This document shows, piece after piece, positions 1-44,500 of a DNA stretch of 64,000 nucleotides. The stretch is from contig OZ116700.1 of the NCBI GenBank assembly GCA_964199315.1, positions 2,728,001 to 2,792,000 of the forward strand, given 5' to 3'. Position numbers and translations under genes: made by a program. Each line of letters begins with the position of its first letter. The stretch's first letter is position 1. This DNA is from Orbicella franksi (taxonomy: Eukaryota). The notes beneath the pieces were generated by a model. The model was given only the letters and a program-made list of their open reading frames with translations, was not told where the DNA came from and made no database searches.

Positions 1-168
1 AAGGTGCAACGGACGTGAAAAATGTGGCGTGCGACAGTTAATTACATTCCAGTCTAAACAGATGATGTTCCGTGCAACGATACTCGGATTTAATTGGTGG
101 CTTGTCAGTAGTCTGTTCAGGAGTTTATTAGGCAGGCATTTCTCACAATAACTTTGCTGAAGGCTTAC

Positions 169-390
169 CACTTTGTTCTCTACGGTTTCTCTGTGCGATC
201 CTCCAGAAAACGTAACAGCCAGGGTGGACGCACAGGTCTCTGTATAATACGTAGAAAGACCGTGGTCACTGATGGCGCCAATCGATATGGTGTATATACT
301 GGTGGTGTAACCATCACAGTTACAGTCATCATCTGTCAGACCTCCATTACCAGTCGCCCACACGTAGATGTTACCTTTGCCGCCGCGACC
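169..390 (-). CDS. Convertase exon 9: oxyanion-hole exon
   Basis: [64 protein letters not shown]; 222 nt, AG/GT flanks. Confidence 0.95.
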
Positions 391-5939: not shown

Positions 5940-7579
5940 ATCGATATGTTAGACATTGGGGATAGACGTTTTACCCTGGATCCATTTGACATTAAGTTTC
6001 GTTCATTTTCTATTCTTACTCAATGTAGCCAGCCTCGTTTTGATTCGTTCCGAGGTGTGACATGAGACAGTTCTGTCTTCCTTATATGGCAAACATTGCT
6101 AAAGGGCGCGAAAGGCAAAAATATCGAATTGGAGGGTTACCTTACAGAAGATAAATCACTGCTTCATGAAAATTAAAGTCAGATTTTATTTAATCCAAAT
6201 GCGAAAGAATTTCCCAAAGAAGATAAATTACAGTTTATTTTTCAGCACTTTACTACAAAGTAATTAAGTTCTAGCATATTTGTAATTATCTAGCACTTAT
6301 GATTTACAGTTTTACGTTCATCTAAAATTCATAGTTGTTGATAGAAAATTAAGTGTTACTATCAATTTGTAAGCTTGTATTTCTATTAATACTCGATTAT
6401 AGACATAAGCTAGTATTTTTCTGGCGATCGTAACATTTCTATTCTGCTTTGAATAGAATAGTTTAAGTTGCTAGGCATGTGAACCTGGCAACGGGCGAGA
6501 TTTTTTTTTTTTTTACAACCTGGCAGCGTATCAGTTAGTGACCCGTTTGAGTTCTAGGTCAGCTAATTTCACAATAGAGCATTTTCTTGTCATTAATCAG
6601 AGCGTACTCGTTGAAGTACATTGATGCGTGAAATATGTTCCACTTGTAAGCTGCTACGCTCAAATGAGCGTGTTGACAAAACATGGTGGCACCGGCAGGT
6701 TGGTGTTGCCATGAATCCATCATCAGAGCGTTGTGTAAAGAACATTACACAGTTAAGCTTCCATAGAACTTATTTCTGCTCTGACTCCAGTCTAACACCA
6801 TTTTGACTTTGTGGCCACCATTAGAAGAGGGATTTTAACACCTCAAATAACCCTATCATCAGCTGACACCAGAGGAAAAGGCCAAAGAAGGTTTTACCTT
6901 AGCTAATGAACGTAATCACAGTCATTGTTAATAACAAACTAATCAAGTGAGCCATCAAATAATCAACTCCTATTTCTGCCTACCTCATGAAGCTGATCCC
7001 GTTAAAGATTGTTAAAGACGTTGAAACAACTTACACGCGTCCTCTAAGTTTATCTGACTTGGATTTCCCCAAATTGCCCCACTAACTGAGGAATATCAGT
7101 TTATTTGAAGTCAGTCTACGACAGCTACATTAACGTATGTAACAAAATTATATTCTGGTTATATACCCTGACAGCTTTTCTTATGAATTATCAAGTGCCC
7201 AGGGAGCTAATTTACGTTTGGCAACTCAAGAGGGCGCTAACTGGAGACGGGTCGCTTATTAGCGACTGGACGCTTATTTCTGTTTGAAAATAAACATTTG
7301 AATGTGACTCAGTGCTTAAAGTGAAAAATAACAGATACTCGATCGCAAGAACCGTAACAAAATGCGTGCTGATGGATAGTCATAATTCAGATGAAAAAGC
7401 AGACCTCAGAATTAGTTAACGTTCGTCTCATCAATATGAGACGAATGAGTTTGCGGCTTGAATGTCACTTTCGCTGTGGGGCGTTTATTGGAAAAGAAAA
7501 TGCTCTTGAGGGGATGAGCGCTTATTAGAAATGGGTGTGGGCGCTTTTTGATAGGAGAGCGCTAAATCGTAACAAAATC

Positions 7580-24900: not shown

Positions 24901-26540
24901 CGTATCAACAATACAGCTTTATAACAATCATGTGTTGCACTTTATTAATCGAGAAAGAAAGATCATTTACCAAATCAGATTTTCTCATTAGTCTTCATCT
25001 TTGTGATTTTGTCCATTAGATTTAAAGTGTCATCTGTTCTGCCATCTTTGCATCTGAAATTATCAGATGAAAAATTCAAGATGTTGAAGAAGGTATGAGA
25101 TACTTTCGTCATTAAAACAATATTTTTGATTCGGCATTTGCTCTTAAAGCACAAACTCCTCATTGAGAAAGCTTATGCCCTTAACACTCACTATTATGAG
25201 AGACTTATATTCCTGCCAGTCTCAGTTTAAGAATCATTTACTGAACCACTAACATCAGACCGAACTGTTTAAAGTTCTTAGATCATTTACCGTTTGGAGT
25301 GCAACAGCCTTCCCTACTTGAAGAAAAGCGAGCCGACGTCCTTTCGAAGGTAAAACAACTTAGGTCTTTATTGGATCGTGGGATTTCTTGAGGCAGAACA
25401 AAACATTTATTTGAGGCGTAGTGTGGACGTATGAATTTACCATTTTGTAACTGTAAATTTACAGCTTTTACCAGTAATGTTTGAGAGGTAGAAAAGCCAG
25501 CTTAAATGTGTTATGCATCATTCTCCAAATTCAAATTCTCTGAACGTTGCCAGAGCGTTTGGTATTATTTTGGTCTAGACATAATGCTCTCAGGGTGTCT
25601 GGCTTGACTCAAGTGTTAAATTGTTAGGGAAAATCGGCAAAACGATGGGAATTTGTAAAATACGGTAAATCTGAACACATTTGCTACAAATCGCAATAGA
25701 ATTGGAGTACGTTCCATCATTTATTTCAGTTGTGATTATCTCTCATCAGAGTGAATGGAAACACAGCTCGTCTACTCTTTCTTTGGAGGAGGCAAGCGAT
25801 CTCCAAGCCTTATTCAATAATGCAATGATTGCACGATTACACAGCACAGAAGGTAGGTTAGAGTTTAAATAATAATCCAATAGACATTTTACTTAAGCCC
25901 GAAACACAATAGGTCAAAACACATATATTAATGTATCTTATTAATGTCTCTTTCTGATATTTACTTGGTGCTTGTTACGCCACTGTTTTATTCATTTAGT
26001 TTTACATTTGTTGTTGATATTTCGTCATTTCTTTGATTGTAGATGAAGATGTTTGGTATGACACGGAAGAGAATCTTCCGGAGGAAAGGTGCGTAGGCCA
26101 GTTAACCTTTGCTGTTTTTAATCGGAAGGAATTTGAGCGCAAGAAAAGGATAATGTTGCATTTAATTTATTGGAGATAATTTATTCAGTAAATAATTAAT
26201 TTAAAATAATTTAGCAAGGTTCTCTTACTTTTTTGTAGTATTATGTGTATCGTAACATTTCTGGGCTCTGCTTGTACTGTTGAACTAGTTTGCTTGTGTA
26301 TCATTCGTCTTCAGTCGGAAAGTGATATGATATTAGGGTTTGCCATTATTCAGCTGGAAAACTGTTTCTTATCCTTTGTTAGAGTCCCTCGTTTCTTAAA
26401 ACCTTCACTTGCTTTCGTCTTTGTAATGTACATGTATGTATTGCGTTTGGAATTTTTGCAGTGCTGGAGACCACGCTGTCGGTAGGGAAGCCCGCGATAT
26501 AGACAAGATCAAATTAGCAGGGAATTTTACCATTAAGAAG
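9969..26540 (+). CDS. VPS13: VPS13 exons 1-34: chorein-N, N-terminal groove and FFAT-position exon
   Basis: 9969-10065, 11952-11995, 12893-12935, 13409-13504, 13870-13980, 14701-14777(GC donor), 14927-14965, 15291-15350, 15816-15875, 16221-16304, 16457-16514, 16773-16846, 17461-17514, 17987-18093, 18531-18605, 18748-18838, 18916-18978, 19318-19441, 20170-20282, 20795-20862, 20965-21036, 21890-21987, 22080-22189, 22682-22740, 23435-23519, 23768-23835(GC donor), 24243-24321, 24565-24652, 24738-24855, 25020-25092, 25275-25349, 25750-25852, 26043-26088, 26462-26540. Confidence 0.92.
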
Positions 26541-29500
26541 GTACATTTATGATGGACCCTGTCAATTCGAACACACACGGGCCATGAAAATCTGGTCGTG
26601 ACACTCAGTCGCTTCGATTTGGAGGCTTTCATAAACGTACATCTTGAGGATGATGGATAAAAGGTTGATCCTCGGGGCTTTGGTCTGCGGAGGTTAAACT
26701 TCAGTTATGTTCTTATGCTCGAAGAGTGTTAGGTACATACAGGATTCAAGGAGCTCAGTCACGGTATTTTCAGATATTTTTACCACGTACAAGATTCCCC
26801 TTGGAATTGAAGAAAACCTGGAAATAGACATTTACTAAGATAGAGAGACATCAAAGAGATAATAATAAACCATAAACGAACAAGGATGCTTAAGGATGGA
26901 GAAGATTAGCGCGGATTACAAACGACGAACTTGAAAATTTAGGCTAAACATTTCAAGACGCCCAAACCGTGACTCAACTCCTTCAGGGGACGAAATGTTT
27001 AGGGGTTCTTAGTAAAGCTTTGTCGTTTTTTAGCTTCTTATCACAGTGGACAAGGCAGATGAACAGTCTACCAGTGGTGATCCATATCTGAGTCTGGAGA
27101 TACGAGATGTTGGAACAGATTTGGCCGTTCATTCATGGGACATTCGTGCTCAAGTTAAACTTGGATTTATTCAGATACTTGATAACCACTGGAAAGGTAT
27201 TTCACTGATTGTATAATACATTTGTTGTACTGTCATATTGCTGGACAAGTCTTAAAGGGAAATTGGCGATAAGATATAACCTACAGGTAAGTTCCGCATT
27301 AGTCTGACAACTGACACCGACAGCGTAGCAATTGCTGCGGACAACATGGAAATAATTTCACGCGCGTTTTGACAAAATTAGAGTTAGTAGAGTTTTTACA
27401 AATCGCAAGTGAAGTTATTTCTTAACTTTACGAGTATTTCGTGTGATTACCTTTTGATGTCATGAGTGACAAATTACATTCACAATCGTGGGTTTTAACT
27501 TATTTACTGCATCGAGAAATCTCACGCCAAACGTTGCCATGGCAATTTTGGAATTTCACATGTGAATTTAAAACGCTGAAATTTCGCGCCAGAATTAAGG
27601 AGTACCTTGTCACCCATGATATTATAAACAAGGGAATTAAATGCTGCAGATGCTTATTTCTGACCGTTATCTGGAGAGATCGTCACCAAACTTTTAAAAC
27701 CATCATTTTAATGAAAGGTGTAAATGGTCTTTGATTTTCAGAAAACAATTTCGCTGGGTTACTTAACGCATGTATGGTCCAGTTCATCCCAATACAACAT
27801 GTTCTTTTAGGCATGCTTTGAAAGTGGGAAGACTTTTTCGTACTCTACCAGTTGTTTTTACTGTTTATTTCATTTTTTTTAAGATATATTTTTTACTTTT
27901 AAGATTTAATACAATTGTTTTGGCGAAGTTGTTACTTTTGGACTTCTTTCATCCTCTTTTTGTCTTGATATACAGACATTGATGGCTCCAATCTTTGCCT
28001 GCTTACCTCATTCGCGACAGATGATTGGATTACAATCAATTACGTCAAGGTACATTCTCAAGAAAAATTAACGGATTGCTTGACACACCCTGTGATAAGT
28101 ATTGTGACAAGCATTTCCATATTTTCAGTAGCGTCACCTTTGATTACTTGTTTAGGTCGTATTCAGGCAGTGTGACCGATATGCAGGTTGCCGGATTTGA
28201 AGTCCGGAGGTACCGTTCAAGTCCCATTTTGACCACCAGCTGGTGTGTTTCTCTGTAGTCCCAAGTTCAACTCCTGGACCACGTACAATTTGCCTCCTGC
28301 CGGTCGAGGATTTTAGCCATGTTATCCTCCTTTAGGACGTTTTTTCTCCAGTAGCCCTGAAGAGCCCCATTGGGGGAGTGGTTAATTAAGATATTGTACA
28401 TTTGTTTTTAAACATACTTCTTTCGTACTGAGATTCCTACTTCCTTATCAATTATTGTCTTTGCTTATTTGTGTGTTTAGGCCGATTCCTCAGGCCCAGA
28501 GTTTAAGGAGACGTTCTACTCTATTGAGCAACTTATAGAAATGAGGTTTAGCTCGCTGAAACTGACAGCCAAACAGGAGGCCCTAGCAAGTTTTCAAATA
28601 TTTGTTCTTAGCTTGTTTCAAAGGTAACAACTCAGACGTTTTATATCTCTATATACCTTTGGGAGGCGCGGTGGCCTCATGGTTAGTGCGTTCGTCCCCG
28701 GAGCGAGCGGTTCGGGTTTGAGCCCTAGCCGGGGACACGGTGTTGTGTTCTTGGGCAAGACAGTTAACTCTCTCAGTGCTTCTCTCCACCCAGGAGTATG
28801 AATAGGTACCGGCGATTTGTTGGGGAAACCTAACAAGTTGTGGGGGAGTGACCTGCGATGGACTAGCATCCCGTCCAGGGGGAGTAGAATTACTCCTAGC
28901 CACTTCATGCTACAGAAACCGGGATAAGTTCCGGCAGCTATGAGCCATCGGCTCCAGGGCTTCACTTATACCAAATACTGTTGATTACGTTTAAGCACAT
29001 AAATGGAAAAAAAAACAACTTGTTGTATCGCCTAGAAAGACATAAACCCCTTTGAAACAATGAATTGAAACTGTAACTTTGGTCTCTTACATATTGTCAG
29101 ATTTTGTGCAAAGTTATCTTATTTACTTCTATCTTTTTAAATCTTTTTAGGGCAACCTTGTAGGGTCCATGTTGCTTTCCTTTTCAAGATGTGCTTTACT
29201 TATATATTTTTGTTACTTACGTCTTGAATTGATGCTATTTTTACCTCAAAATACAGCAATAAATATTGATCGATTTGTGAACATGCCGCCAGTGATGAAT
29301 TTCATGTCTTTCGTGTAGGCCACTTTGCATCATTTCCTATTATCCTCTATAAGACAAGCTAAACAACACAGTAGTTGAAATGTTCTCAACTTTAAGGCTA
29401 TATATTCCTGAATTAAGCCATTAAACCAGTTAGAGACGTGATGTAATTTCGAGCACACTGTAGAAGTTGAAGAATTGGACTTTTTGATTATTATTTTTTT

Positions 29501-32500
29501 GTAGCACTGGCCTTGAACCTGAGTGGGAAAATGTCCCTCGGCGATTGCTAGAGACTATTACGGAAGAGGATCAACTTGACAGCTCCGTTGCCACGAAAGG
29601 TACCGCAAAATTCTTATGAGTATTGACTTCAATATGTTGTGAAAATTCAGTTTTCAAAGAGCATGTCACGTCAGCTGTGATGTCCTTGATTCTCGAGCGT
29701 TACTGAGAGAGTAAATACCTGTGAAGGGATTTTTGGCAAATACTTCCCTTGTAACCGACGAATCTTGTCAGAATTTCACTTTTGGAACTTGTCCCATGTA
29801 GGATTACATTTTATGTTGGTAGAAGTTTCACGCTTTCTCATTTAAATACGCTGTCTGGATCGAGAGAACCGTTTCTTCCTAAGTGTTTCTGGGAATTTTC
29901 AAGTGCATACCTAGCCTCTTACAGGCGTTCAGTAAGTTAGGGCGCAGCGCGTCAAAACGGCGGAGCGAAATAAAGGAGAGTGAGACTTGGGTGAGGAGCG
30001 ACCAACCGCCCGTTCTCTCGCCTTCCCGCGTCACGCTTCTCCCCAATTTTTCCCTGCGCCATTTTTCGCGCTGCGCCCCAACTAACTGAACGCCTGGAAG
30101 AGACTAGCGTATACCCAAGCCATTGAACCCACGGCTCAATGTAACTAAGAGCCACTAGAAAACGTTTGGATAAAAATCCTGGTGAAGATACAAATGAAAC
30201 AAAGAATATAAGCAATAAATGGTTTTTAAAACCGGTCGATTTGCTCCCAACGTTTTTCATGTCGCCATTTTCTTAACTTTCATAAGTAAGGGGCTTCACG
30301 ATTGTATAACTGTTCTAACTGTCTCTGTTGTTTTGATCGCCCATGATTAGTGACTACGAAGAATAAAACAGAAGATAAGAAATCACAAAGTGATTCAGAC
30401 GCGGTCAACTTCAAGGTTGTTGCAGCAGTAGAAAAAGTCACTGTCATTCTTAGTTCCATGGATCGCCATGTTGGGAAGGTGGATGTGAAGGGTAAGTCGG
30501 TGTCATTGGTTGATTTATGGTCACGTGGTAATTGCTCAATTCAAATGCTGCTTGGCGGGCAACAAGTAAGCAATTGTTGCCTGCTCTCCCTCTAACCATA
30601 GGGTACTTCTCCTTGACTAACGACTTTACATTTAACTGTAGCTATACAACACTGGTCCGTTAAAAAGAGTTAATATTCTGTTTTCTCTGGAATCAGATCT
30701 TGATGTTTCTCTCGGAACCAGCGATTAAGTGTTTAATGTAAAGCTTAGAAAGTCTTTACGTCAAGAAGTCCTCAGTTTATTTCTCCTTGATGCATTAATT
30801 GCGGGCTCGGTGCCAGATATTTTTCTTTCAGTCTTCTGTGATTATAATTTGGAGTGTCCTCAATTAGCTTTATTACGCTATACACGTTGTCACTAAAGTT
30901 ATTATTTCTTATCACATTTATGTACGCAATTTACGCCGTTGCGAAACTATTGCCTAAAATTGAATCTGTAAGTATAATTAGTCTTTTTTTTGCGCGTGTG
31001 TGTGTGCTTTGTGTGCTGTTGCATGTGACGTTTCCTTATTTTCTCTTCTAATCTGACCCAAATAAATAATTGCTTTAATCACTGAGGATGGCTGCCCAGT
31101 CTTATTAGCTCACTAAGGTTATTTCGGGCAGCCATGTACTAATCTGTATTTTAAACTTTTTTTTAGTACAATTAAATTTTAGCTATGAGTGAGTACAAAT
31201 AAAGTTGTTGTTATTGTTGAAATGCCTCTGTTTATTCACTGGTAGGGCTTGATGTCAAAATAGATGTGTTTACTGCCGAGACAAACATAACAGCCAAGTA
31301 AGTACGGATCAATATGAAGATTATTGACTCTGTGCATCATACAATGTAACGTTAAGACAAGTCATGTGATTCTACCTTTAAATCTCCTTATACTAAGATT
31401 GAAGCCAATCTTTTAAGTTATGTAACTTTTTTTCTGTCAGATTGGAAGACTTAGGTATCGAAGATCTCACAAAAGGAACGTTGTATCCTCAAGTAAGGAC
31501 AAATTCCTTGGCATTGTTTGCTTTTCATCTCATAGGCCTGATATAAAAGGACGTTGATTTTATGATCACTTCTGTTTGCATGAGTTTGCAACAAAGTCAA
31601 TATTCATTAGGTAATATTTCTAGTGTACTGCATTATCTTTTTTTGTGATGGTTCGACGTCTTGTTAGTCACAGTTTAACGTGATATTAAACACTTTTATA
31701 TGCTTTTTTTGTTTTAAAAGATCTTAGATTTGGCGGATAACACAGTTTTCGACTGCCAGGTGAGTTGGTTGTTAGGCTATACGATATTGTGTATCACAAC
31801 ATGGAGAAATAATTTAAATTATTTGTTACCTCGTACGACCAGTTGAAGTCACATTTATTAAATCAAATACAACACTAACAGTACTCAAACTCATGTTACA
31901 TTGCATTACTTACAACACTTTAACATTAAATTGCCACGTTACTTAAATTAATATATAGCAAAATAGTTGTGCCATTTAGACATTTCCTTTCAATTGGTTC
32001 AAAGTTTACATACGTCCCTTTAGAAAAAAAAAACCATATTTTGTTATCGTGAATTGGTGACTTGGGTAAAGTGAAATAAATGAAGAAGCGTTCTCAAGTC
32101 GAATTACTCTGAGTAATTTTGAGTAATTCGACTTGAGAACGCTTCGTCATATATGTTATATCTTTTTATCGCTATTCTTTGTTCAACACGGTCAGGATAA
32201 TTATTTAGCATAGGTGATAAAAAATTGGAGGCTAGGTGCTTGGGCACTAGATCCAAACCAATCGTATACAAAATCAGTGTGCACAATGTTAAAATAAAGT
32301 TAACTATAGAATTGTTATTTACTGAATCCTGTACCTAGTTTTTTTTCATGTACTTTGCTTTAAGATAACAATCTTTAACAAGTCCTCGCAAGGTGCTTTT
32401 GCAGACCAGGATCCGACAGCTCTGGATTTCTCAGTCAATGTAAAACTTGGAAAGCTCCGATTTGTGTTTCTTGGCTATTTTGTGGCCCATCTTCAGGTAT

Positions 32501-35500
32501 GTGTATTGTTAATGCAATTGACTTGTATTTCGTGACTTATATAACCCCAGGCTTGCAAGATTAGTTTTTTCGTACAAGTGAAAATATATGAAAGACCATA
32601 AAATTGAACTTCGGAGAAAGATGCAGATGCAAAGACAGTTAAAATGTATGATCTTTCATTAAATTATTCATTTGTATCTTCACCATATGTACGGGTATAG
32701 TAGGAACTCACAACGTAACCAGATCCCAGTTGGGTTGATAGCTCAGTTGGTAGAGCACTGCACCGGTATCCCAAAGGTCATGGGTTGGAATCCCGTACAG
32801 ACCTGAATTTTTTTCAGGCTTTACTTTCACAACTGCTTAAGTTGTGTAGAACTGCGATGATTATTGATGTCTTTGCTGTAGTTGTTTCCGTAAGCACTTC
32901 TTGTTCTCTATTCTGGATTTAGCCTTGTGCAACATTGTTCTTTCCAACCAAACCTGTTGTTATCACTCGTGCTTGCGCGCATTCTTGCAAATCCCCACCG
33001 TAATTATATTAATCTTGCTTGCAACAAAACGTGCTCACACTTTGTGTTTATGAACCTTTTTTAAAACTGCAATCGCTGTTTGTAGAATTTCCTCCAAGCA
33101 CTTGTCAGTCCAGAAACAGTTGCATACGCCCAAGAAGTAACTCAGAAAGCTGTTTTGAACCAGGTGAGTGAATGGGTTAGTTAGCAGTGTAGACCTAGAC
33201 CGGCGTTTCCATATTGGAACCAACCAGTGGCAATTCTTCGACCAGACTTATGTCAGGGGGCTCTTGTGTCCGTTATCGATTCATGACGAAAAATTTCTGA
33301 TGTCTCTATTGTTTTCTTTGCCTATCAAGTTGTCTAACTTTTGAAAAACTCTCATTCTGTTCTCTACCAGTTTACATGTTTTGCATGGTTTACCTTCCGA
33401 AGGGAATACAACCCTATTGACGTAACTCTTATGCTCTCTTCCTTTTTTATCACCATATTGTGCGACATGGTTGAACTTGCAAGGCCAAGACACTCGAGCT
33501 TCTCGCGAAGCTCTTTGTTTGTTTCCTATCTAGTAATATAACTTCCTTTGGCGTCGCCAAACCTTGATTGGATCTTACCCTGTCTGTATTGCTCTTTGCG
33601 TAGTAAAGCAATAAAGACCTTCTTCCTCCAAAGTGACATAAATCTTTAAAGAGCCAGTATTGACTACTTATGCCGACATTGTCTCCTCTTTTCAGGTTCA
33701 GCAAAAACAGGGCGCAAAGATTGGATTAAACATTTCCGTGAATGCACCACAAATTCTAATCCCCTGCAATTCAAGATCGAGCGAGAAGCTCATTGCAGAC
33801 CTGGGTCAGTTGCACATTGCTAATTCCATTGTCAGCTCGTCCCAGCATGGCCTTATTGACCGGATGGATGTAGCACTAAGCTCATTCCAAGTTTCAGGGT
33901 ATGCCGAACATTGTGTGTAGAATATAATGACATTTTATTGTAAATAGCCAACTGGTCTGTCCCCTGCCAGTTGAGATTTTTAACCATGTTATGCTCATGT
34001 CCGTCTTATGTTTCACTGTTTGTTTTTACTGGCCCTGAAAAGCCCCATTTCTCAATGCACGTATTTTTTCAAAGACTAATTAAGGAAAGCTAAGGAAATT
34101 GTAAGGAAACCTTTAGCTTGTCATTTTATGTAAATCATGAATGCATTTCACTGTATAAATCTAAACTGTATGAACGGTTTAAGGAAAGTACGTTCGACTT
34201 CACGACTATTTCTTTTATTTAGCAATTCTCAAGTAGAGAAATGCCTTAGTAACCATCTGATTGAACCAGTTGAGTTGAATGTGATAGTAAAGAGACGACT
34301 GAACTTAGAGAAGAGTGACCTTCCTTTGATTGAAGTCGAGGGAAATTTGGAGTTGTTTAAGGTATGGATATGTTTGATTTCTGTGTTTAATTTCGCTGAT
34401 ATATTAAACACTGTCTTATGCAGAGAGCGCGAGCAGTGCTTGTTGCAAGGAGCAATAAAGTTCAAACATCTTAGATCCTCATCAGTTGTGATGGACCAAA
34501 GGGCGCGTACAAAATCTACTACGTTCACGTTTTTTCACCGCAATGTGTATGAGGAGTAGTCTGTGCTCTTAAATTTCTACTGCTCGGAACACCTTCAGTT
34601 ACATTTTCATGTAAGCAAAACAGCATGCAGACTAACCGTTGAAATATTTTTTGGTTGCATTTGTTTTTCATAGATAAATTTAGGACTCAATGATTTCCAA
34701 ATGCTGATGATGATTTTAAATGGTAACTTGTTGGAGGGCCAGCAGGGCAAGTATATGTATCGTCTTTATACATGCTTTATACCCCTCTACCTTGAACTTA
34801 AAGTTAAGTAATTTGGCTCTTTAACATTTTTTCAAACAGAACGTCAAGCTGTTCCTAAAGTGGATACAGAGCAACCAGAGGGGCAGCAGACATCACCAGA
34901 CACAGGTGTGATGTCTTTACCCATTTCCTTTGCCTGGTTCAAAATGTTTCATATCTGCAATAGTTGCTATGAACAATGTAAAGAAACTTGATTGTGTGTA
35001 TCTTTAAGGTTCTTTGGACAAAACAGATGCCAAATCCATTGAGGAAGTACCAAATGTTAAATGTCATTTTACTATAACCAAGGTTGGTGTAGTTGTTTTT
35101 CTATAAGCTCAAAGTTAACTGCCCAATTCAGTTAAATAACAAATCCTTCTCGCTGGATATGTGATTTGTAGGCATGTCACAGACGACAACGTCGCGTTGG
35201 AACATTTTACCCTAAGCAATTTTCATTTGCCTTACTCTGACCCAATTGTGATTATAACTCCTTTTTTTTGTTTTGTTAATCGTGTTGCACTGTGGTATTT
35301 GACTGTACTAGATTACGTTTCGCACTCTGTACTGTCTTGTTGTAAATTCCTTACAAACATAATCCGATTATTACCTATAGGTTCTAGTTAGTTCGCCCAA
35401 AATTGTCGATGGAGTTTCCAGGCCTTATTTGGTTCTGGAGACAAACAACATGAGTGCCATTGTCACCATGGAAACGTGGATTCTTAGTGCATCTGCAAAA

Positions 35501-38500
35501 CTTGGAGGAATAGAGTTGCTTGATCATCTAAATAAAGGTAAAAAATTCCTTGGATTTCTGCTTTTTGTCAGAAATAATAATGGAAATGAGAAGATAAGAA
35601 ATCGTTATAAAATAGAATCAGTTATTAATTCTTATTTCTCTTTACTCATACCAAACAGAAGTCAACAGCGTTTAATTTAGTAGTGTCAATGTCACAAAAA
35701 GGAAGACTTGAAAGTAATGTCAGAGACTATCATTTACTCGCTAGGTGAAGATGTTAAAAAAATTGAGAGAAAACACAGTTTTATGAATGGTTCATTTGCA
35801 AAGTAACTGTTCAAAGGTAACCTGCTACATTTTCTGGCAAATTCAAGACGCTTGAGATGGTTATGTTTTGAAGTGCTATCAATCAAATATTTGAGATCGT
35901 AGTAGGGAACACATAACGTGAGCTTTAAAAGTTGATTTAGATCTTCGTGTAGCTAATTGATGGTTTTCTTGTTCAGGTGAAGATGGCTCACCGGTAAAAT
36001 TATTATCTTCTTCACGGGACGCAGATCTGATCTCAGTTTCATACAAAAAGGTGCGTTTAGTCAACTTGTGATAGTTTTTCCCGGATTGAGTCTGATTGGG
36101 CGTTGAGAGATTGCGACAAGTCTCTAATTAGTATTTATTATGTCAATCTCCTATGTGACAGTTTATTTCCTATCTTTGAACTTGAAAATGGTGTCATGAC
36201 GGTTCCGAAACGTCGCTTGGTCTTATCGCTAATTATTACCACAAAAATATCTACCATTCAGGTCAGGGAAGCAGACCTTACTTAATGAGCTTTCGTTCGT
36301 TGTGTCTAGCTGTTGGGTGTTATTGTTTACAAAGTAGTCGATTTTGTGGCTCTATGTTATAATTATTTCAATAAAATCATGCTCTGACCACATGGACAGT
36401 CATTTGAGCAGTTGAAAATTGGGCAAGGTCTTGGGATCAAATCCCATCGATATCAAATCATTTGTCCTTAACATTGTAGGGTTGACAATCAGTACAGAGG
36501 TTGACCCTGACATTTTTTTTTTTAACGTGGATATTATCCTTTTCTTTAGGTCGATCCCAGATGTCCAGAATTCGAGTCGACTTTTTGCACCGTTGAACAG
36601 CAAATAAAAGTAACGTTTTCCAAATTGAAGATCGATTGCCTGCAAAAAGCGTTGATGGATTTGCAAATACATGGTCTTGCTCTTATTTCCAGGTAATACG
36701 TTATGCCATTATGATCCAAAAAGTTGTTATCCCATATAAAGGTGCACGCCACTTTGCCAAGAACACGGTGGTAATTAAATTTAGGGCCTCTCCATATGAG
36801 CCCGGTTTATCTGGCTGGCCCAGTTACCAAGTTTTCGCTTCACTCGTATTTTCTTTGTTAAAATTTTGACGTGTTCATATGAGAAGGTGGGCCAGCCCAG
36901 TTACCAGAAACCGAGATCTCGGGATTCTCGGCAACCGGGTTGAAACTATTTTTCATTAAAACACTCAAGCCCGGGTGACCGGGACGAAACTTTTTTGACA
37001 AAATAGCGTCATTTTCGCAGCATAGCGACCAAAATAGCATAAGTTATGAAGAGGCCCTATGTGAAGAGGCCATTAAATGGTCCAGACGTTCTAGTCCTGA
37101 GTTTCACTTTGCAAGATACTTAAAAACCCGACGCTACAGGAAATAAAGTATTCTTGATCGCTTGCATGAGTGTATATAGCATTTTTCTTGAAATGAAAAT
37201 ATTAGGATGCTTCATCTATAATTATAATAGTATAAATTGAGACTACTTTTATCGAGGCAAATTTGGCTCTAGAAGTAGAAATGGTGATGCCCAATGTCAA
37301 TTCATTGAAAAATAATTTGTTTTATTTCAGTCTTGGAGAATCGTCTACAAGTACTCTAGCACCGGACGTACAGAACAAGCCCGAAACAGGTCAGAAAGGA
37401 CAAAGGACTGTTAGTCTGAAAGTGGAGGCAGCGCTGTCAGAAGTGGATGTTCTCTTGAGGCAACCCCGCAAGAATTTGGCTGACATCAAGGTTCGAGGTA
37501 TGTGAACTTAATTTCTGGAATACTCTACTTGCTCAAATGAACTGTTAAACTTAAACATACCTTCAGGCTTAGATCATCCTGTAAAGCTGTAATTATCACT
37601 TGGTTGACTAACTTTAATGAATTACTTCCGGAAGTTTTTATCTCTCCTTCTGGTGCATGGATCACGTTGATTTCTTTCATGTTTTTCAACCATTTCATGG
37701 TATCATTTTCCTTAAATGGCTTTACCAAGTAGCCTCCTTTAAACGTGTAAATTGTGACAGGTTAATTGCAAATATAAAGGCGTATAAGTGAAGGAACTAC
37801 ATGTACTTTGCAGATCAGAATTGATAACGGAAGTAGGGGCTACGTACTACCGTACATGTAATTTCAATCCAGGTAGACAAGCTACGTACATTGTCACACT
37901 TAAGGCTGGTTTCCATACGATCGCAGACGATCGCGGATCACAGATCGCAAAAAGTTCTGCGATCGTCTGCGATGATATGGAAACACGCATCTGCGATCGT
38001 CTGCGATCAATTGCGATCGTGCGATCATATGGAAACCAAAGTTCTGCGATCTGCGATCGAACCGTATCCCATAATATTTTGAATTCCGACCCATGATTCG
38101 ACGCTTCTTTGCAACAAAGCAACTGCTTATTTGTTGTAAACATGGCTGGCGTTGAACAAGGTAACGTTAGTAACGAGAAATTTACGGAGGAATTTGCGCG
38201 ATATCAGTGCGTTTACCACCGTAACAGTAAAGATTTCAAAGACAAAAACAAAAGGCTAACTGCTGGGAAAAAATCGGGGAGAAATTTAATTTATCGGCGG
38301 CTGAAGCGGAGGTCAAATCCCGCAACATAAGAACTGCGTATGGTCGTTATCTGAAGCGATTGAAAACGCTACCTCCTGGATCGGGGCGAGATGCAGTGCC
38401 GAGGAAATTTGCAGCAAAGTTTCCTCCTCGACATCCGCCATATTGTTTGTTGCGATTTTCCCGCCAGCACAACGCGGGTGTAATTTTGACAGTTCCACTG

Positions 38501-41500
38501 TCCGAAATGTATGCAACAGTCGGCTCTGCGATCGCTTGCGATCGTCTGCGATTATATGGAAACAACTCTCTTTGCGATCGTCTACGATCTGCGATTTGCG
38601 ATCCGCGATCATCTGCGATCGTCTGCGATCGTCTGCGATCATATGGAAACCAGCCTTTATTTACAAACATTAAACCATTTACCCGCAACAGGAACTGACG
38701 AGTTTTCTACAGTTATTTTCTCAGTAAACCATTATTGTCAAAGTCAACTGACGTTTGTTTTGTAGGTCTCACAGCAGAGCTGCTTTTATGGGAAGGTGGA
38801 CTTGTTTTAAAGTCCAGGTGAGTCTGGTTGGTACGTGTTTGTGATCAGTAAACTGTGGAGCTGCTTCTATTGTTTTGTTTTCTTAAAGTAAGACGAGATT
38901 TAGTTTTGTCGGTTGCAGTACAAATTTTAGCAGTATGTGCAACCTTTAACTGGGTAAACCGAAAACATGGATAGCACCAAATGAAAGAACTGCTTTATGA
39001 CTTTTACATGAATGCATAGTCACACTTTAGGGTGTCATCCACAGCTTCAAGAAGTAAACCAAACAATACCTTTAGTACACTCTGGAGGCAATAAATATTT
39101 GGTTGGGGATGAGGCTCCGGTAAAAAGGAAGATTTATAGAGGAGAATTCAATTGGAATTGGAAGCTATTTGTTTTTGTTAAGGTTCGAGATAATGATTGT
39201 CTGGCATTCTTCTCTATCACGTTTTACAGGCAGAATGACCTTTCAGTTGTCGATCTTAATGCCCAGTCATACTATCCTAAGGTAAAGTTTAAAAAAAAGA
39301 CATAAAAACATAGATAAAGCGAAATATCAGTTGTTTTTGCGTAGTAGCTTGAACCTGTGCAAGTTTCAGCTCAATTGTTGAAACCTCTCTTCCAAAACTG
39401 TGTGAATCTTTATTATTTAAGGCAACCCTTTAACCTATCAATTATCTCATTGGAATAAATATTACCACTTCTTTCTACTACCACATTTATAACTTATCAC
39501 CTGCATTGATCAATAAATGTCAGTGTTTTCCTCTGGTATTTTTGAAGTAAGCACGAATGGTCTCCATAATATAAAGTGTTTACAGTTCGGGGCCTGTTAA
39601 AATGTAGTTTGTTTATTTCCTCTGGTTTGTTTTGACAGGTTATCTCTGTAGAGAACGAGAATGTTTTTGACTTCGAGGTAAGAGTGCACGCGAACTACCA
39701 AATGAATACGAATTAATTGAAAAGTGATCTTCGAGATTTTACACTGTTCTAATATCCGTTTCGATTAGTCTACACGATTTGCAAGTAAAGTTCTACGCCC
39801 ATCTCAGTGCACTGCTTCCTTATTTACAGGCCTTCTCGATGTTGTCAACATTCTGCGACCTATGGAAAATGAAATTTTTTCTTAGTTAGGGAATTCCAAT
39901 GTGAAATAACTAAAACTTCACAGTCTTTTTTCTTGGTAATCTTCAATGCATTGGTATTGATTCAAAACTGCTCCATTCGAGTCTAGGTATAGGCCTTAGA
40001 TGAGTTGCTAAACTTGATGATAAGAAAATTAAGACTCTAGTGATATTCTAATTGTAAATTTCGTAGTTCGCATTGTAAAATTTGACTTACGGTATCTTCA
40101 TTTCAAAAATGTTATCTTTTTAGTTTAAATACTTCAACGATACAAACAAACCAACGATGGATGAGCCAAACACTGCTGATCTCACAAAGCCAGATGGAAA
40201 CCTTGAGCTCAACATTGGCAAGATAAACATTGTCTTTCTGTATCGATTCATCTCTGAACTGTTGGTGAGTGTTTCTTAGTTTGAAGAACATGTTTCTGTC
40301 ATTGAGATTTTAATTCTCTCTTTCTTAAACAGCGATCGTGAACTTTTACGAGCACTAAAGAGGTAAACCTCTCTCTTAAAATGTTTTACATGTCTTTTTA
40401 TATATATATATATTAACCCATGTATTGTTGACTTTCTCTCTTTCATAAGCAATTTGTTGAACCTTTGACAAGTCCTCAATCAACCGAGTATGTAAAAGCA
40501 ACTGCACAAAGAGCAGCCACCGAACAAGTAAATGCGTTATAAAAATCTGTGTTATTGCAATCCTGACATCCTCATCATCGTTTTCTTTGTCATCCTCGTC
40601 ATCGCTTTCCTTCTCTTCCTCGTCCACTTCCTCGCCCTGAATCCTTATCCTTACATTCGTTTTAAAGGCCCATTAACCGATCTTTTCGAGCCGTTGCTAA
40701 GGAAAATTTAGTCTCATCTAACCTCCTCATTTTTAATTAGTTCAGAGTTATTTGATGTGTTTCAACTTTTTCATGATCAGTAACACTAGTGATGACGTCA
40801 TCAGGCCACGCCCATGGTCATGTGACTAATACAGAAAAAATGCAAAGGCTCCCAGGCAAATTACTTTCTCGGGATTTTTTCCATTGATTTAGTATTTTAA
40901 TTTAAATCCTCATTACGCTATGCATCGAGTTTGTTTCATTTCTAAAAGGTCAGATTTTGAGAGCATTTCAAAATATTGAAAAATTCGTAATTTTCTGAAA
41001 AAAAGCACGATTTCGAAAAAGGAATGCATAGCTATGTTGCCAACGTTGGCTTTAATCGAAATTCGTCGAAAAAGGCTGGATTTAATGAAAAACCGTGTTT
41101 TCTTTAGCATTTAAAGAAACCGGAAGTGCGCCCGATATCTATTGGAAGTTACCCTATCAGCGCGTGCGCAATTTACATTACCAGCGCACTTCGGTAAGAT
41201 CAAACAAAGCCACACGGAGTTAGTTTTTCTGTTTCTATTGCTCTTGTTTTTCCGTCTTTCTCTTATTTTGTCTTTGCTTGTACTTTTTTTACTTTGCATT
41301 TTGCGAAACACAAAGAAAAACATCTAAAATGTATGCGAATTTGCAACTTTTTGAGTTGTTTTTATTTTCCGTGCTCAGGCTGACGTAAGTGACCGGAAGT
41401 GAAATTTCACCTCCTTAGCAACGCGCGCGAGCGCGCGCATGAATCGGTTAATGGGCCCTTAATCCTTAGTTCAATCCACATTTTTGTTGTTATCCTCATC

Positions 41501-44500
41501 TATTTCCTCGTCACCATCCACATCGTTACCCTCATTAATTATCCCCATTCCATCTTCATCTTCATCTCCATCATCATCTTCATCCACATCATCATTCTCG
41601 CTCTTATACACATTCACTTCTCTTATCCCCTTCTTTGCATCAGCTTCTATAATCCTGAAACGACATCGGTGTTAAATATGAATCGGATGGTGGAAATTGT
41701 TGAATTTCTTCTTCAATTGGTATACTTCCCTAACACTTTGATGTTTGATTTCTACAGATAGAGTCGATTCAAAGCCAGGGAACCCGCATTGCTTTACAAG
41801 TGGCAATTAGTGCTCCACTCGTGATAATTCCGCGCCACTCTCACTCGGTCGATATGCTTCTTGTTGATCTGGGACATTTGGATCTTCAGAATGAATTTGA
41901 TCTTCTACCATTGCCAGGTGAACACGACGACAAGGAGAGTGTATTTGATGTCATGGAATTGTCTCTACAATCAGTGCAGCTAACGAGGTAGGCCACATTT
42001 TTTGCGAGATTAGCATGTTTTTTTTTTCTTTTTTTTTTCTGTAGTGGAGGACCAGAATGGATTATTCCTTGTGTCCTTCGGAGTACTTTCAACCATTAAA
42101 CAGTGTATGGTATGAAAAATACAGTCATCATTTCGAGAAATGTCCGAGTTTTTGTTCTGAAGTCGCAGGATGCTTCATCAGATAAGATAATTAATTTCCT
42201 TTTTGTAAACCTCTTTACTAAGCAGTAAACGAAGAGAATCTAAATTGTTATGGTAAGAATCTCAATTTAAATCTAAATTTTGGAGATAAATGAAGGTGTT
42301 CGTTAGTTTCCCATGGAACACTAGTTTCCGCGAATGGTGAATGTTCCAAACTAGAGGTTTTTCAACATGTGTTTTTCAAAATGTCGATTAATTTGTTCCT
42401 ACAGGAACAGGTAAGTTAAAAACTTCAAATCCACCATGTATCAGTGAATTGTACATTCAAGTAACTGGAATGCGATTTAGATGATGTTAACTGGAGTGTT
42501 CAGTAGATGTGTTTCGTCATTTATTTTGTCCGGCTGTAGGGGTGTCATGGATTTAAGTTCATCTGCTGTTGTCAAGCGACATCTTATCGAGCCAATAAAA
42601 CTTGATGCGAACATAAAACGTTCACTGCAGCCTTCTTGCCAAGACGTCCCGGTTCTAGAATGTTCTGCCACCTTGGACTTTGTTAAGGTATGTCACCGTT
42701 GGTTGTGTGAAATTTCTTGAATGTCTTTCTTAAAACAACGTATGCCAGCGTAATACCGATTAAATTCTGGTTCAGGTTTGGCCCTCTTTCCGGCGCATCA
42801 TGCTAAAGATCATTCTGTACCATGAACTGTTGTCAGAGTTGGCTGAAGTAATGTTGGTTAGCGCTAAGACTTTTGAACACCATAATTTCTCGGTATTTAT
42901 CGTTAAAAGTGGTAACAAACGTGATCATATCACATTTTATGTAGATTTTGTATGTTTTAAAATTTTTATACGGAGACGTGTCTCCATTACATGTAAATGA
43001 ATGTTACCTTTTTTCCCCTCAATTGCGAATTCGCAGCTGCAATATCAAGTTTGCGAAATTTGTTTTATATTTCCTTCTTTTTTTTTTATAGATGAATCTG
43101 GGTCAACAAGATTACCACGTACTCACTACACTTTTTCAAGAAAATCTAAAGGAATCTGAAAGTTACGCCTTGATGGAAGGTAACACGTGTTTGTTACTGA
43201 ACAAGTGTATTGTTCTCAAAGCATTAAATTAGTCTACATCCAGAGTCAGCTTCTCAGGGTCATTGATAATTCAGTGTATTAACACAAAAGTAGTCATAAT
43301 CGTCACAGTGTTGGGAAATGTGTTCATAATTACCATAGATGGTAATGATAATATTTCCCTGTTTCTCCGTAGTTTTAGTATCAATTGAGGGCATATAGAA
43401 AACACGAGAGGCAGTGTTTATTGAGATTTCCAGGCACTCTCTTCTCGTTGTTTGAAATTATGATGAACGTTTTCTCTCGTGTTTGATATGATACGTCCAT
43501 TTTTGTTGTTTTGTAGAGGCAAATCAAACATCTGAAAACTTGGCAGAGGAACAAGAAGAACAGATTGAACCTACTATTGCAACTAATGCTTCATCAGGTA
43601 TGATTGGATTGTTTTTGGACGTCTCTGCTTGTAGTGTGATTCCAGTGGATTGAGCATTGTAAATTTAGCTACTTGGGTAGAAGTACAGTAGTTGCTGCGT
43701 GATTATGGAATAAGCGTAGAGGTGGTGAAGATAATTTTATTTCTGATATACGTTTCCTAAAACAGCTGTATATTTTACTGAATAATCATGATACCTGTTC
43801 CTTAGTGAAACACATGTAACAGCTCAACAGATATATGTAGTGGTTTGTCTTCATAGAACCTGGTCCAACTCAGGAAGCTACTGACACAGTGTGGGATCAG
43901 ATGGTGTTTTCATTTGATCTTGCCGGAGCGAGCCTTACTCTGTACAGTAATGAGAAACCTCTGGTAAGTTATTTGCAATCAATTACCGCAATCATATCAC
44001 AAGGAAATGTTGTGTTGTGGTACAAAGGGGCCGAGGTACTGAGCAGATGTGCTTTATTAGTCGAGCGTTTTCTTTAAGGAACCTGAAGACTTCTCACTGT
44101 TCCTGTACGCTGCTAGTTTCTTATTGAGATACAAATCAATTTTTATTTTAGAGAAGTCTTGAATTTACCCAACGCACACAATAAACTAAGGGAGCGTTTC
44201 TTTGGAATGATACGGATCAGGATCCTGATCTCTGATCACCGGATCATGACGAATCAAAGGAACCAGTGAATCCATTGTGGGCGCATCGGTTTCTTTGATG
44301 CACCACGATCTAAGTGATCTTGCATCATTGATCCTGATCGGTGCAGCAAAAGAACCGGTGAATCCACTCTCGGCAAGGATTCATCAGTTTCTTTGATGCG
44401 CCACGATCTGAGTGATGTTAGATCATTGATCTTGATCCAGACGAACGAACGAATGTACCTTAAGTGACAGAGTAAGGGCCACTTTAGCCTCCTTGTCACT

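Follow-up and report, generated by a model that had tools for sequence, protein, structure and literature searches.

A VPS13-family gene of clade II in Orbicella franksi

The analyzed window, a stretch of 64,000 nucleotides from contig OZ116700.1 of the coral Orbicella franksi, contains on its plus strand a gene of the VPS13 family, 'VPS13A-like' in type and belonging to clade II (positions 9969 to 64000, exons 1 to 93), as recognized by spliced alignments and Pfam matches. The in-window model was obtained by spliced alignment of proteins to the genome, with the orthologues of Oculina and Montipora as guides and with three boundaries corrected from RNA joints, and comprises 93 GT/GC-AG exons (9969 to 63987) with zero in-frame stops. 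Spliced alignment placed 22 further exons 3' of the window end, with a TGA stop approximately 12.5 kb beyond it, giving approximately 115 exons and a protein of approximately 4,083 amino acids for the whole gene. The representative-set homologue matches, mostly single-exon fragments, included no full-length protein from O. franksi.

The predicted N-terminus represents a Chorein-N start (MFESLV...) of the VPS13_N type, and the Montipora orthologue scored 620 bits on PF12624, compared to a cut-off of 80. Exons of the window matched the Pfam families VPS13_M (PF25033) and VPS13_N, and two orthologues (P0282 and P0283) exceeded the curated cut-offs for PF25033, PF25036, and PF25037 (VPS13_M, VAB, and VPS13_C), with the domains arranged in the VPS13 order. 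Judged from these sequence features, the gene is a member of the VPS13 family of bridge-like lipid-transfer proteins, and both lipid transfer and a location at contact sites are predicted for its product. Exon 33 (26043 to 26088, plus strand), just 5' of the first of the two units described below, encodes the acidic stretch DEDVWYDTEE, which, as read from the translation, resembles an FFAT motif and is putatively VAP-binding.

In N-terminal protein trees, the gene was placed in clade II (support 100), apart from the clade of vertebrate VPS13A and VPS13C (98) and from VPS13D. These trees assign it to the metazoan sister clade of VPS13A/C and show that it is not a VPS13A/C orthologue. Clade II was found in cnidarians and invertebrate bilaterians, and no member was detected among the sampled vertebrates. 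Against human VPS13C and VPS13A, respectively, the clade I protein of amphioxus scored 867 and 292 bits and its clade II protein 374 and 158 bits; both human proteins belong to clade I. The vertebrate VPS13A/C framing in which the initial annotation had presented the gene was abandoned, since the gene falls in a sister clade without any vertebrate sequence. Invertebrates carry a second VPS13A/C-like gene, apparently lost in vertebrates, which matters when "VPS13A-like" genes of fly, worm, and cnidarians are used as models of human disease genes.

Two tandem units and their joint splicing

Unit 1 comprises exons 35 to 49 (27034 to 35082; 1524 nt, 508 codons, residues 898 to 1405) and unit 2 comprises exons 50 to 63 (35381 to 43963; 1557 nt, 519 codons, residues 1406 to 1924), both on the plus strand and both bounded by phase-0 introns at either end; between them lies a GT-AG intron of 298 nt (35083 to 35380). 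The initial annotation had described these two exon blocks, spanning positions 27034 to 43963, as repeating each other in order and intron phase, and the rebuilt model returned the same coordinates and codon counts. Comparison of the units by blastp yielded 30.6% identity over 467 amino acids (E = 1.3e-70, 222 bits), whereas 100 shuffles of unit 2, used as a control, averaged 17 bits and did not exceed 25 bits. Furthermore, intron phase was identical in 13 of the 13 one-to-one exon pairs, and an unguided six-frame self-comparison of the window revealed six collinear pairs at an offset of approximately 8 kb. The sole structural difference is that unit 2 has one exon, exon 53, where unit 1 has two, exons 38 and 39. 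All six exon pairs of equal length reported previously (74, 143, 52, 52, 39, and 78 nt) were recovered, and the identity of 20/47 for the 143-nt pair was reproduced; for the 74-nt pair, 10/24 was obtained in place of the earlier 10/25.

The best-conserved exon of unit 1, exon 45 (33696 to 33898, plus strand), encodes the motif APxIxIP...DLGxL and matched VPS13_M with E = 2.8e-9, and its paralogue in unit 2, exon 59 (41758 to 41987, plus strand), matched the same family with E = 1.1e-5. A profile built from these two exons matched human VPS13C twice, at residues 1235 to 1299 and 1753 to 1817. No DNA-level similarity was detected in a block-to-block comparison of the two genomic blocks, which excludes a recent duplication as well as an artefact of assembly. 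Exons 35 to 49 and 50 to 63 are tandem paralogues originating from a real and very old duplication.

Both units are spliced into one mRNA, with joint splicing across the boundary between them. The joint of exon 49 to exon 50 (35082 to 35381) was carried by an RNA contig of 837 nt with a depth of 75 (run X13) and by one poly(A) read (run X23), and the same contig, together with poly(A) reads, carried the joints linking exons 46 to 53. In total, RNA joints confirmed exons 43 to 49 of unit 1 and exons 50 to 53 of unit 2, with a loose end continuing into exon 54. Exon 47 (34674 to 34746, plus strand) features a GC donor, the resulting GC-AG intron being documented by the joint 34746 to 34840 in the X13 contig and in one X23 read. 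The earlier proposal that RNA would reveal both copies spliced together was borne out at the joint between the units, in both contig and read, within short-read data that cover exons 43 to 54 and originate from a sample of 95–99% similarity; among these coral short reads and contigs, no single molecule spanning both whole units was seen. Logan contigs of 11.6 kb encode a 3,777-aa two-unit protein of the Hydractinia type, and they most likely represent transcripts, because they are too short to contain introns. The Hydractinia isoform X2, which is 498 aa shorter than X1, was considered as a form skipping one unit; it proved to be an N-terminal truncation that retains both.

Distribution of the two-unit layout and age of the duplication

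Internal repeats in proteins were sought by means of masked sliding windows; whole-protein self-BLAST missed the repeats even in VPS13C, as matches nested in the self-hit are discarded by BLAST. The two-unit layout was also found in Oculina, Montipora, Nematostella, the octocoral Dendronephthya, and Hydractinia, and the previously suggested survey of cnidarian clades thus returned two units in every cnidarian examined, including the octocoral and Hydractinia. Both units are open and conserved across five anthozoan species, and within Nematostella, coral units 1 and 2 matched best with units 1 and 2, respectively. Since Montipora, Oculina, Nematostella, and Dendronephthya possess orthologous units 1 and 2, the duplication predates crown Anthozoa and is not coral-specific. 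The initial annotation had assumed a separate duplication "in this lineage"; the separation from VPS13C held, but the lineage comprises at least all Anthozoa and not just corals.

The closest full-length relatives are the 'VPS13A-like' proteins of bilaterian invertebrates (3,450 to 3,580 aa; for example Ptychodera flava XP_070568681.1, Branchiostoma lanceolatum VPS13A, Ixodes, and Haliotis), which likewise belong to clade II and share the same Pfam order. However, unlike the coral protein, these are one-unit proteins with no sign of a second copy. In the unit tree, the anthozoan unit 1 clade (97/90) and unit 2 clade (100/99) were joined to each other (97/91), and together they were sister to 15 bilaterian clade II units. 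The duplication most probably dates to the cnidarian stem, following the divergence from Bilateria.

An origin in the clade II ancestor before the cnidarian–bilaterian split, followed by clean loss in bilaterians, for instance by unequal recombination between the units, is the strongest competing explanation, and it is considered rather unlikely. The best tree, in which the anthozoan units are joined (97/91), argues against it; however, placing unit 2 next to the bilaterian units of clade II lowered the lnL by only 2.3 and was not rejected by the AU test (p-AU 0.336), and in a reduced unit tree of 31 rows the backbone collapsed, leaving the bilaterian units in a polytomy with units 1 and 2. 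No remnant of a second unit was detected in 15 of 15 bilaterian clade II proteins, all of them one-unit, or in invertebrate clade I proteins, but this represents weak counter-evidence, because a tandem repeat can be removed exactly. In addition, the earlier origin requires one extra event, and the SP....Y signature, correctly noted in the initial annotation as common to both copies, occurs in both units of Anthozoa and is absent in the bilaterian and VPS13C units shown. Majority-residue site counts for strict four-group patterns were 1 to 1; looser counts favored the pairing of unit 1 with unit 2, but are biased by unequal group sizes and were not used. Clade II sampling comprised cnidarians and bilaterians; three word-based homologue searches yielded few cnidarians and no sponge, ctenophore, or placozoan sequence. 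The Hydractinia units featured very long branches and paired weakly with each other (44/69); a shared origin with the anthozoan duplication was not rejected by the AU test (p = 0.126), and profile scores favored the pairing of like-numbered units (1 with 1, 2 with 2).

A block of approximately 15 exons was duplicated in tandem, with unequal crossing-over within introns as the most likely mechanism; this took place before the extant anthozoan lineages diverged, and most probably on the cnidarian stem. The reading frame was kept because the block edges lie at phase-0 introns and both copies are multiples of three bases. That the blocks are instead mutually exclusive cassettes, or an annotation or assembly artefact with one unit per protein, is hardly credible: the one-unit VPS13C-like model of Bubo scandiacus demonstrates that annotation can yield such forms, but RNA joins exon 49 to exon 50, one contig crosses from unit 1 into unit 2, both units are open and conserved in the five anthozoan species, and copies only 30% identical without DNA similarity argue against misassembly.

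Independence from the duplications in VPS13C and VPS13D

In vertebrate VPS13C, RBG5-7 is duplicated internally (Kumar et al. 2018, PMC6168267; Levine 2022, PMC7613979; structure 9yqp). The coral protein resembles it in having a tandem copy of approximately 510 aa starting around residue 900, after the FFAT region, with the same three modules and 15 RBG domains, and in being accompanied by a one-unit paralogue in the same genome. Unit matches in the model before boundary correction comprised residues 898 to 1412 and 1413 to 1931, compared to 903 to 1374 and 1422 to 1927 in frog VPS13C. In contrast to that of VPS13C, from which it arose separately, the coral duplication belongs to another paralogue clade and is much older and cnidarian rather than vertebrate; the coral protein is also longer, at approximately 4,083 aa, because of other insertions.

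A single event ancestral to VPS13A/C-like genes, with subsequent loss in VPS13A and most invertebrates, would account for the shared position, period, and three-module content, but is extremely improbable. VPS13C units 1 and 2 nested as sisters within vertebrates, with the single lamprey unit outside both, and constraining unit 1 of the coral to join unit 1 of VPS13C lowered the lnL by 184 (p-AU 2.8e-86), which rejects the very grouping named in the initial annotation as contradicting its claim of independence. Furthermore, the coral and VPS13C units lack a one-to-one match: both coral-type units best-matched one and the same stretch of human VPS13C, and VPS13C units did not consistently favor either of the profiles for units 1 and 2. 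The trees and the AU test demonstrate a coral duplication separate from that of vertebrate VPS13C. The coral copies had also been described as more diverged than the VPS13C copies, in agreement with identities of 24–38% between cnidarian units 1 and 2 compared to about 30–66% in VPS13C. The shared W, in contrast, had been offered as diagnostic and is not, because amphioxus clade I carries it as well.

The RBG5-7 duplication of VPS13D is old, weakly self-similar, kept as far as Trichoplax, and independent of that in VPS13C (Levine 2022, PMC7613979). The age of the duplication, its coverage of the same three modules with weak residual self-similarity, and a length of approximately 4,100 aa near that of VPS13D could suggest that the gene is the coral VPS13D. 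This candidate was rejected and is given practically no weight, as VPS13D sequences formed a separate, fully supported clade with the coral gene outside it, VPS13D proteins produced one or two weak tblastn matches to the window, and no UBA domain was found in the orthologues by Pfam at E < 0.01. A clade II VPS13 gene with a tandem duplication of approximately 15 exons separate from those of VPS13C and VPS13D, encoding approximately 15 modules and expressed as one mRNA, is regarded as the likely account of the locus as a whole.

Groove modules and bridge length

Each unit could be aligned over its whole length with the repeat of VPS13C, as well as with the corresponding part of VPS13A and of fungal Vps13. 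The VPS13C repeat represents RBG5-7, which is duplicated in VPS13C and VPS13D (Levine 2022, PMC7613979). By homology, each coral unit is assigned to the RBG5-7 segment (VPS13A numbering), so the groove is predicted to comprise approximately 15 modules, compared to the 12 RBG domains of human VPS13A and yeast Vps13. These two proteins belong to the same family, with the same overall architecture and full-length homology to the unit, but they possess one unit instead of two, and VPS13A falls in clade I. The structure prediction proposed earlier for counting modules was made with AlphaFold2 for the stretch of the Oculina protein that holds both units: the model featured six beta blocks, three per unit, each closed by a helix or loop, but it is of low confidence (mean pLDDT 53.5, five-sequence alignment), and the module count is therefore based mainly on homology. 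Foldseek matched this model to the bridge-like transfer proteins LPD-3 (E = 1.5e-20), Vps13 (an N-terminal fragment), and ATG2A, in line with a repeating-beta-groove (RBG) fold.

The VPS13C rod, about 30 nm long, was reduced to about 24 nm by deletion of residues 1235–1748 (PMC9303930), and by analogy the extra coral unit may lengthen the bridge by approximately 5–6 nm. The O. franksi clade I gene has one unit only; the genome thus probably holds a long/short pair, with two units in clade II and one in clade I, as in the case of VPS13C and VPS13A. The longer bridge may conceivably be linked to a wider membrane contact.

To our knowledge, VPS13C and VPS13D are the only animal VPS13 length variants described so far; nothing relevant was found in the literature on cnidarian VPS13, nor any paper describing the coral duplication. 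The cnidarian clade II gene is at least the third instance of a doubling of the three RBG5-7 modules, besides VPS13C and VPS13D. VPS13 proteins are thought to be fixed-length lipid bridges, and the matching of length to organelle gap is an open question (Levine 2022, PMC7613979). With at least three independent doublings, it is tentatively proposed, as a reading with nearly even prospects, that RBG5-7 is the preferred step for VPS13 bridge length, and that cnidarians and vertebrates converged on a pair of 15 and 12 modules, presumably serving different contact widths. The coral doubling, hundreds of millions of years old, involves the same modules in the same place and was kept beside a one-unit paralogue in every cnidarian examined, which suggests that only the RBG5-7 segment can double without upsetting the groove and the protein ends, and that a long/short bridge pair has been useful more than once. 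If true, Nematostella and Hydractinia would offer a natural second system for relating bridge length to contact spacing. Separately, further candidates for RBG5-7 repeats were observed in a Pocillopora clade I protein model with a recent triple (an exact-product look-up for the Pocillopora P0284 locus gave no record) and in unnamed proteins with extra partial units.

Gene Model and Duplicated Exon Block

Long plus-strand open stretches in the window, G000:C3:2728001-2792000, match the Pfam families VPS13_M and VPS13_N. Since no full-length close protein from Orbicella franksi itself was retrieved, a spliced aligner was written, and the gene model was obtained by protein-to-genome spliced alignment using the orthologues of Oculina patagonica (P0282) and Montipora foliosa (P0283) as guides. 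The model comprises 93 exons within positions 9969–63987, with GT/GC–AG ends at every intron and zero in-frame stops, and the modelled protein begins with the Chorein-N sequence MFESLV.... A search of the 20 kb beyond the window added 22 exons followed by a TGA stop, the complete gene having approximately 115 exons and a product of approximately 4,083 aa. The domains VPS13_N, VPS13_M, VAB, and VPS13_C were present in the orthologues, while a UBA domain was not detected in them (Pfam). RNA joints corrected the boundaries of exon 44 (33086–33163), exon 45 (start at 33696), and exon 47 (end at 34746, with a GC donor), all on the plus strand. Two further GC donors are predicted by the spliced model after exons 6 and 26 (14777/14778 and 23835/23836), and exon 45 features tandem acceptors 6 nt apart (33696/33702), of which the RNA uses 33696.

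A six-frame self-comparison of the window yielded six collinear matches at an offset of approximately 8 kb, corresponding to two tandem units, namely exons 35–49 (unit 1, 27034–35082) and exons 50–63 (unit 2, 35381–43963). The initial annotation had proposed that these exon blocks repeat each other in order and intron phase; the phase was identical in 13 out of 13 one-to-one exon pairs, exon 53 of unit 2 being the counterpart of exons 38 and 39 of unit 1. Its counts of 508 and 519 codons, as well as the six exon pairs of equal length (74, 143, 52, 52, 39, and 78 nt), were matched exactly by the RNA-corrected model. Of the residue identities it had listed, 20/47 for the 143-nt pair was reproduced, whereas 10/24 instead of 10/25 was obtained for the 74-nt pair. 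Aligned with each other, units 1 and 2 scored 222 bits (467 aa at 30.6% identity; shuffled controls ≤25 bits), and no similarity between the two genomic blocks was found at the DNA level or in the introns. Both ends of each unit lie at phase-0 boundaries and each length is a multiple of three bases, as is required for the in-frame duplication of an exon block.

RNA from four runs was compared with positions 32300–38200. An 837-nt contig from the cDNA library X13 features the joints 34361→34674, 34746→34840, 34905→35009, 35082→35381, 35537→35977, 36050→36550, and 36692→37331, and therefore passes from unit 1 into unit 2. The same joints were recovered in raw poly(A) reads of run X23 (1–3 reads each), and loose RNA ends on both sides enter exons 42 and 54. 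Splicing of unit 1 onto unit 2 is thus borne out by short reads and one contig crossing the joint between the units, and no sign of unit skipping was seen over 32300–38200 at the thin coverage available. Most reads were 95–99% identical to the window, and hence originate from a related sample. Intronic depth spikes at 32694–32890 and 37816–38200 (up to approximately 4,400 in X13 contigs), accompanied by numerous loose ends and an opposite-strand joint at 38008/38009, look like transcribed repeats outside the VPS13 mRNA.

Placement within the VPS13 Family

VPS13D was suspected first, because a duplication of the repeating-beta-groove (RBG) modules 5–7 has been reported for it; VPS13C and VPS13D both duplicated RBG5–7, the VPS13D event being the older one (Levine 2022, PMC7613979). 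This assignment was ruled out, as VPS13D proteins barely match the gene and fall outside the clades described below. The top full-length matches were invertebrate "VPS13A-like" proteins from Ptychodera, Antedon, and amphioxus.

In family trees built on the N-terminal 900 residues, metazoan VPS13A/C-like proteins form two well-supported clades with cnidarians and bilaterians in each. The gene studied here groups with proteins from Montipora, Nematostella, Dendronephthya, and Hydractinia inside the fully supported clade II, which also contains hemichordate, echinoderm, amphioxus, nemertean, mollusc, chelicerate, barnacle, and some insect proteins of approximately 3,450–3,580 aa. Its sister, clade I, comprises vertebrate VPS13A and VPS13C, a lamprey protein, a second amphioxus gene, Saccoglossus, Patiria, a second Patella gene, Schistocerca, Diabrotica, and Clytia. 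A choanoflagellate protein, VPS13D, and fungal proteins fall outside both clades. The gene is not an orthologue of vertebrate VPS13A/C, since it belongs to clade II and the vertebrate proteins to clade I. Against the human VPS13A and VPS13C chains, the amphioxus clade I protein scores approximately twice as high as its clade II protein, and none of the homologue searches returned a clade II protein from a vertebrate. Both clades are represented in amphioxus, echinoderms, hemichordates, and Patella, and in insects taken as a group. Clade II proteins are labelled "VPS13A-like" at NCBI (3,450–4,090 aa), and no paper describing the split was found. A third VPS13_M match in this genome of approximately 497 Mb, a stop-free open frame of 495 aa at G000:C3:12000821-12001321, presumably represents VPS13D or VPS13B.

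Origin and Age of the Duplication

The initial annotation had considered the duplication of about 500 aa to be independent of that in vertebrate VPS13C, and the unit tree (IQ-TREE, 56 rows) agrees with this view: the VPS13C copies nest within vertebrates, the lamprey unit falling outside the pair, and the coral copies do not pair off with VPS13C copies 1 and 2. Constraining anthozoan unit 1 to group with unit 1 of VPS13C cost 184 lnL (p-AU 2.8e-86). Among the sequence features cited in favour of independence, the W of HSWDI/ETWIL was found in amphioxus clade I too and is therefore not diagnostic; the SP....Y pattern is common to anthozoan units 1 and 2 and missing in the aligned bilaterian and VPS13C units. 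A Bubo scandiacus protein (P0252, 3197 aa) has an N-terminus nearly identical to owl VPS13C, yet a single unit; in this gene model, the two similar VPS13C units have probably been merged into one, a genuine one-unit isoform being the other possibility.

A survey of cnidarians, as had been suggested, revealed two units in Nematostella (639–1102 and 1144–1622), Montipora, Oculina, and the octocoral Dendronephthya by masked self-comparison, and two full units in Hydractinia by unit-profile search. The two-unit protein of the Hydractinia type (3,777 aa) is encoded by Logan contigs of 11.6 kb, which are most likely transcripts, because their length leaves no room for introns. A second unit or remnant was absent from every bilaterian clade II and every invertebrate clade I protein examined. 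Coral units 1 and 2 have their best matches in Nematostella units 1 and 2, respectively, and the tree supports an anthozoan unit 1 clade (97/90), a unit 2 clade (100/99), and the joining of both (97/91) as sister to the bilaterian clade II units. The alternative of grouping unit 2 with the bilaterian units cost only 2.3 lnL (p-AU 0.336), and the backbone joining unit 1, unit 2, and the bilaterian units collapsed in a smaller data set. A duplication postdating the cnidarian–bilaterian split is therefore favoured, but not proven. The Hydractinia units sit on long branches and are only weakly placed in the trees; their profile scores lean towards matching each of them to the anthozoan unit of the same number.

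Two-unit proteins are already present at NCBI as unremarked gene models. No publication on cnidarian VPS13 or on the duplication described here turned up in full-text searches, and Levine's survey covered eight organisms, cnidarians not among them (PMC7613979). We regard the coral duplication as a new case, of independent origin, of a type of change that is already known.

Predicted Structure and Unit-Number Variants

Each Oculina unit aligns full length to the VPS13C repeat, the same part of VPS13A, and approximately positions 950–1396 of fungal Vps13; in Levine's scheme, this segment is RBG5–7. An AlphaFold2 model of the two-unit region, calculated from an alignment of five sequences with a low mean pLDDT of 53.5, displays six beta blocks, three per unit (beta parts 60–88), each closed by a helix or loop, and Foldseek matched it to LPD-3, Vps13, and ATG2A. 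Deletion of one repeat period shortened the VPS13C rod from approximately 30 nm to approximately 24 nm and narrowed the membrane gap by approximately 5 nm (Cai et al., PMC9303930). By analogy, the cnidarian two-unit protein should be approximately 5–6 nm longer than a 12-module VPS13. The coral's own clade I gene (C1:21.697–21.702 Mb) has one unit, so that, as in vertebrates, paralogues with two units and with one unit occur in the same genome.

Unlike this one-unit clade I gene, the Pocillopora verrucosa clade I protein P0284 ("VPS13C isoform X9", 3608 aa), whose model begins inside a unit, carries three tandem units of 82–90% mutual identity and a period of approximately 530 aa. This pattern may reflect either a recent additional expansion of the segment or an error in the gene model. 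The divergent VPS13-like proteins P0006 (2327 aa, ENA) and P0010 (1971 aa, Logan) share approximately 23% identity with Patella clade I. In P0006, a complete unit precedes two additional copies of about the last two-thirds of the unit; P0010 contains three of these partial copies.

Within the window, positions 1–6000 contain minus-strand exons of a subtilisin-like proprotein convertase, for example in the open stretch 1–564 with a 12-letter protein segment. The intron after exon 45 harbours a 60-nt element (33938–33998) with at least 40 genome copies at 90–94% identity, probably a short interspersed or MITE-like repeat.
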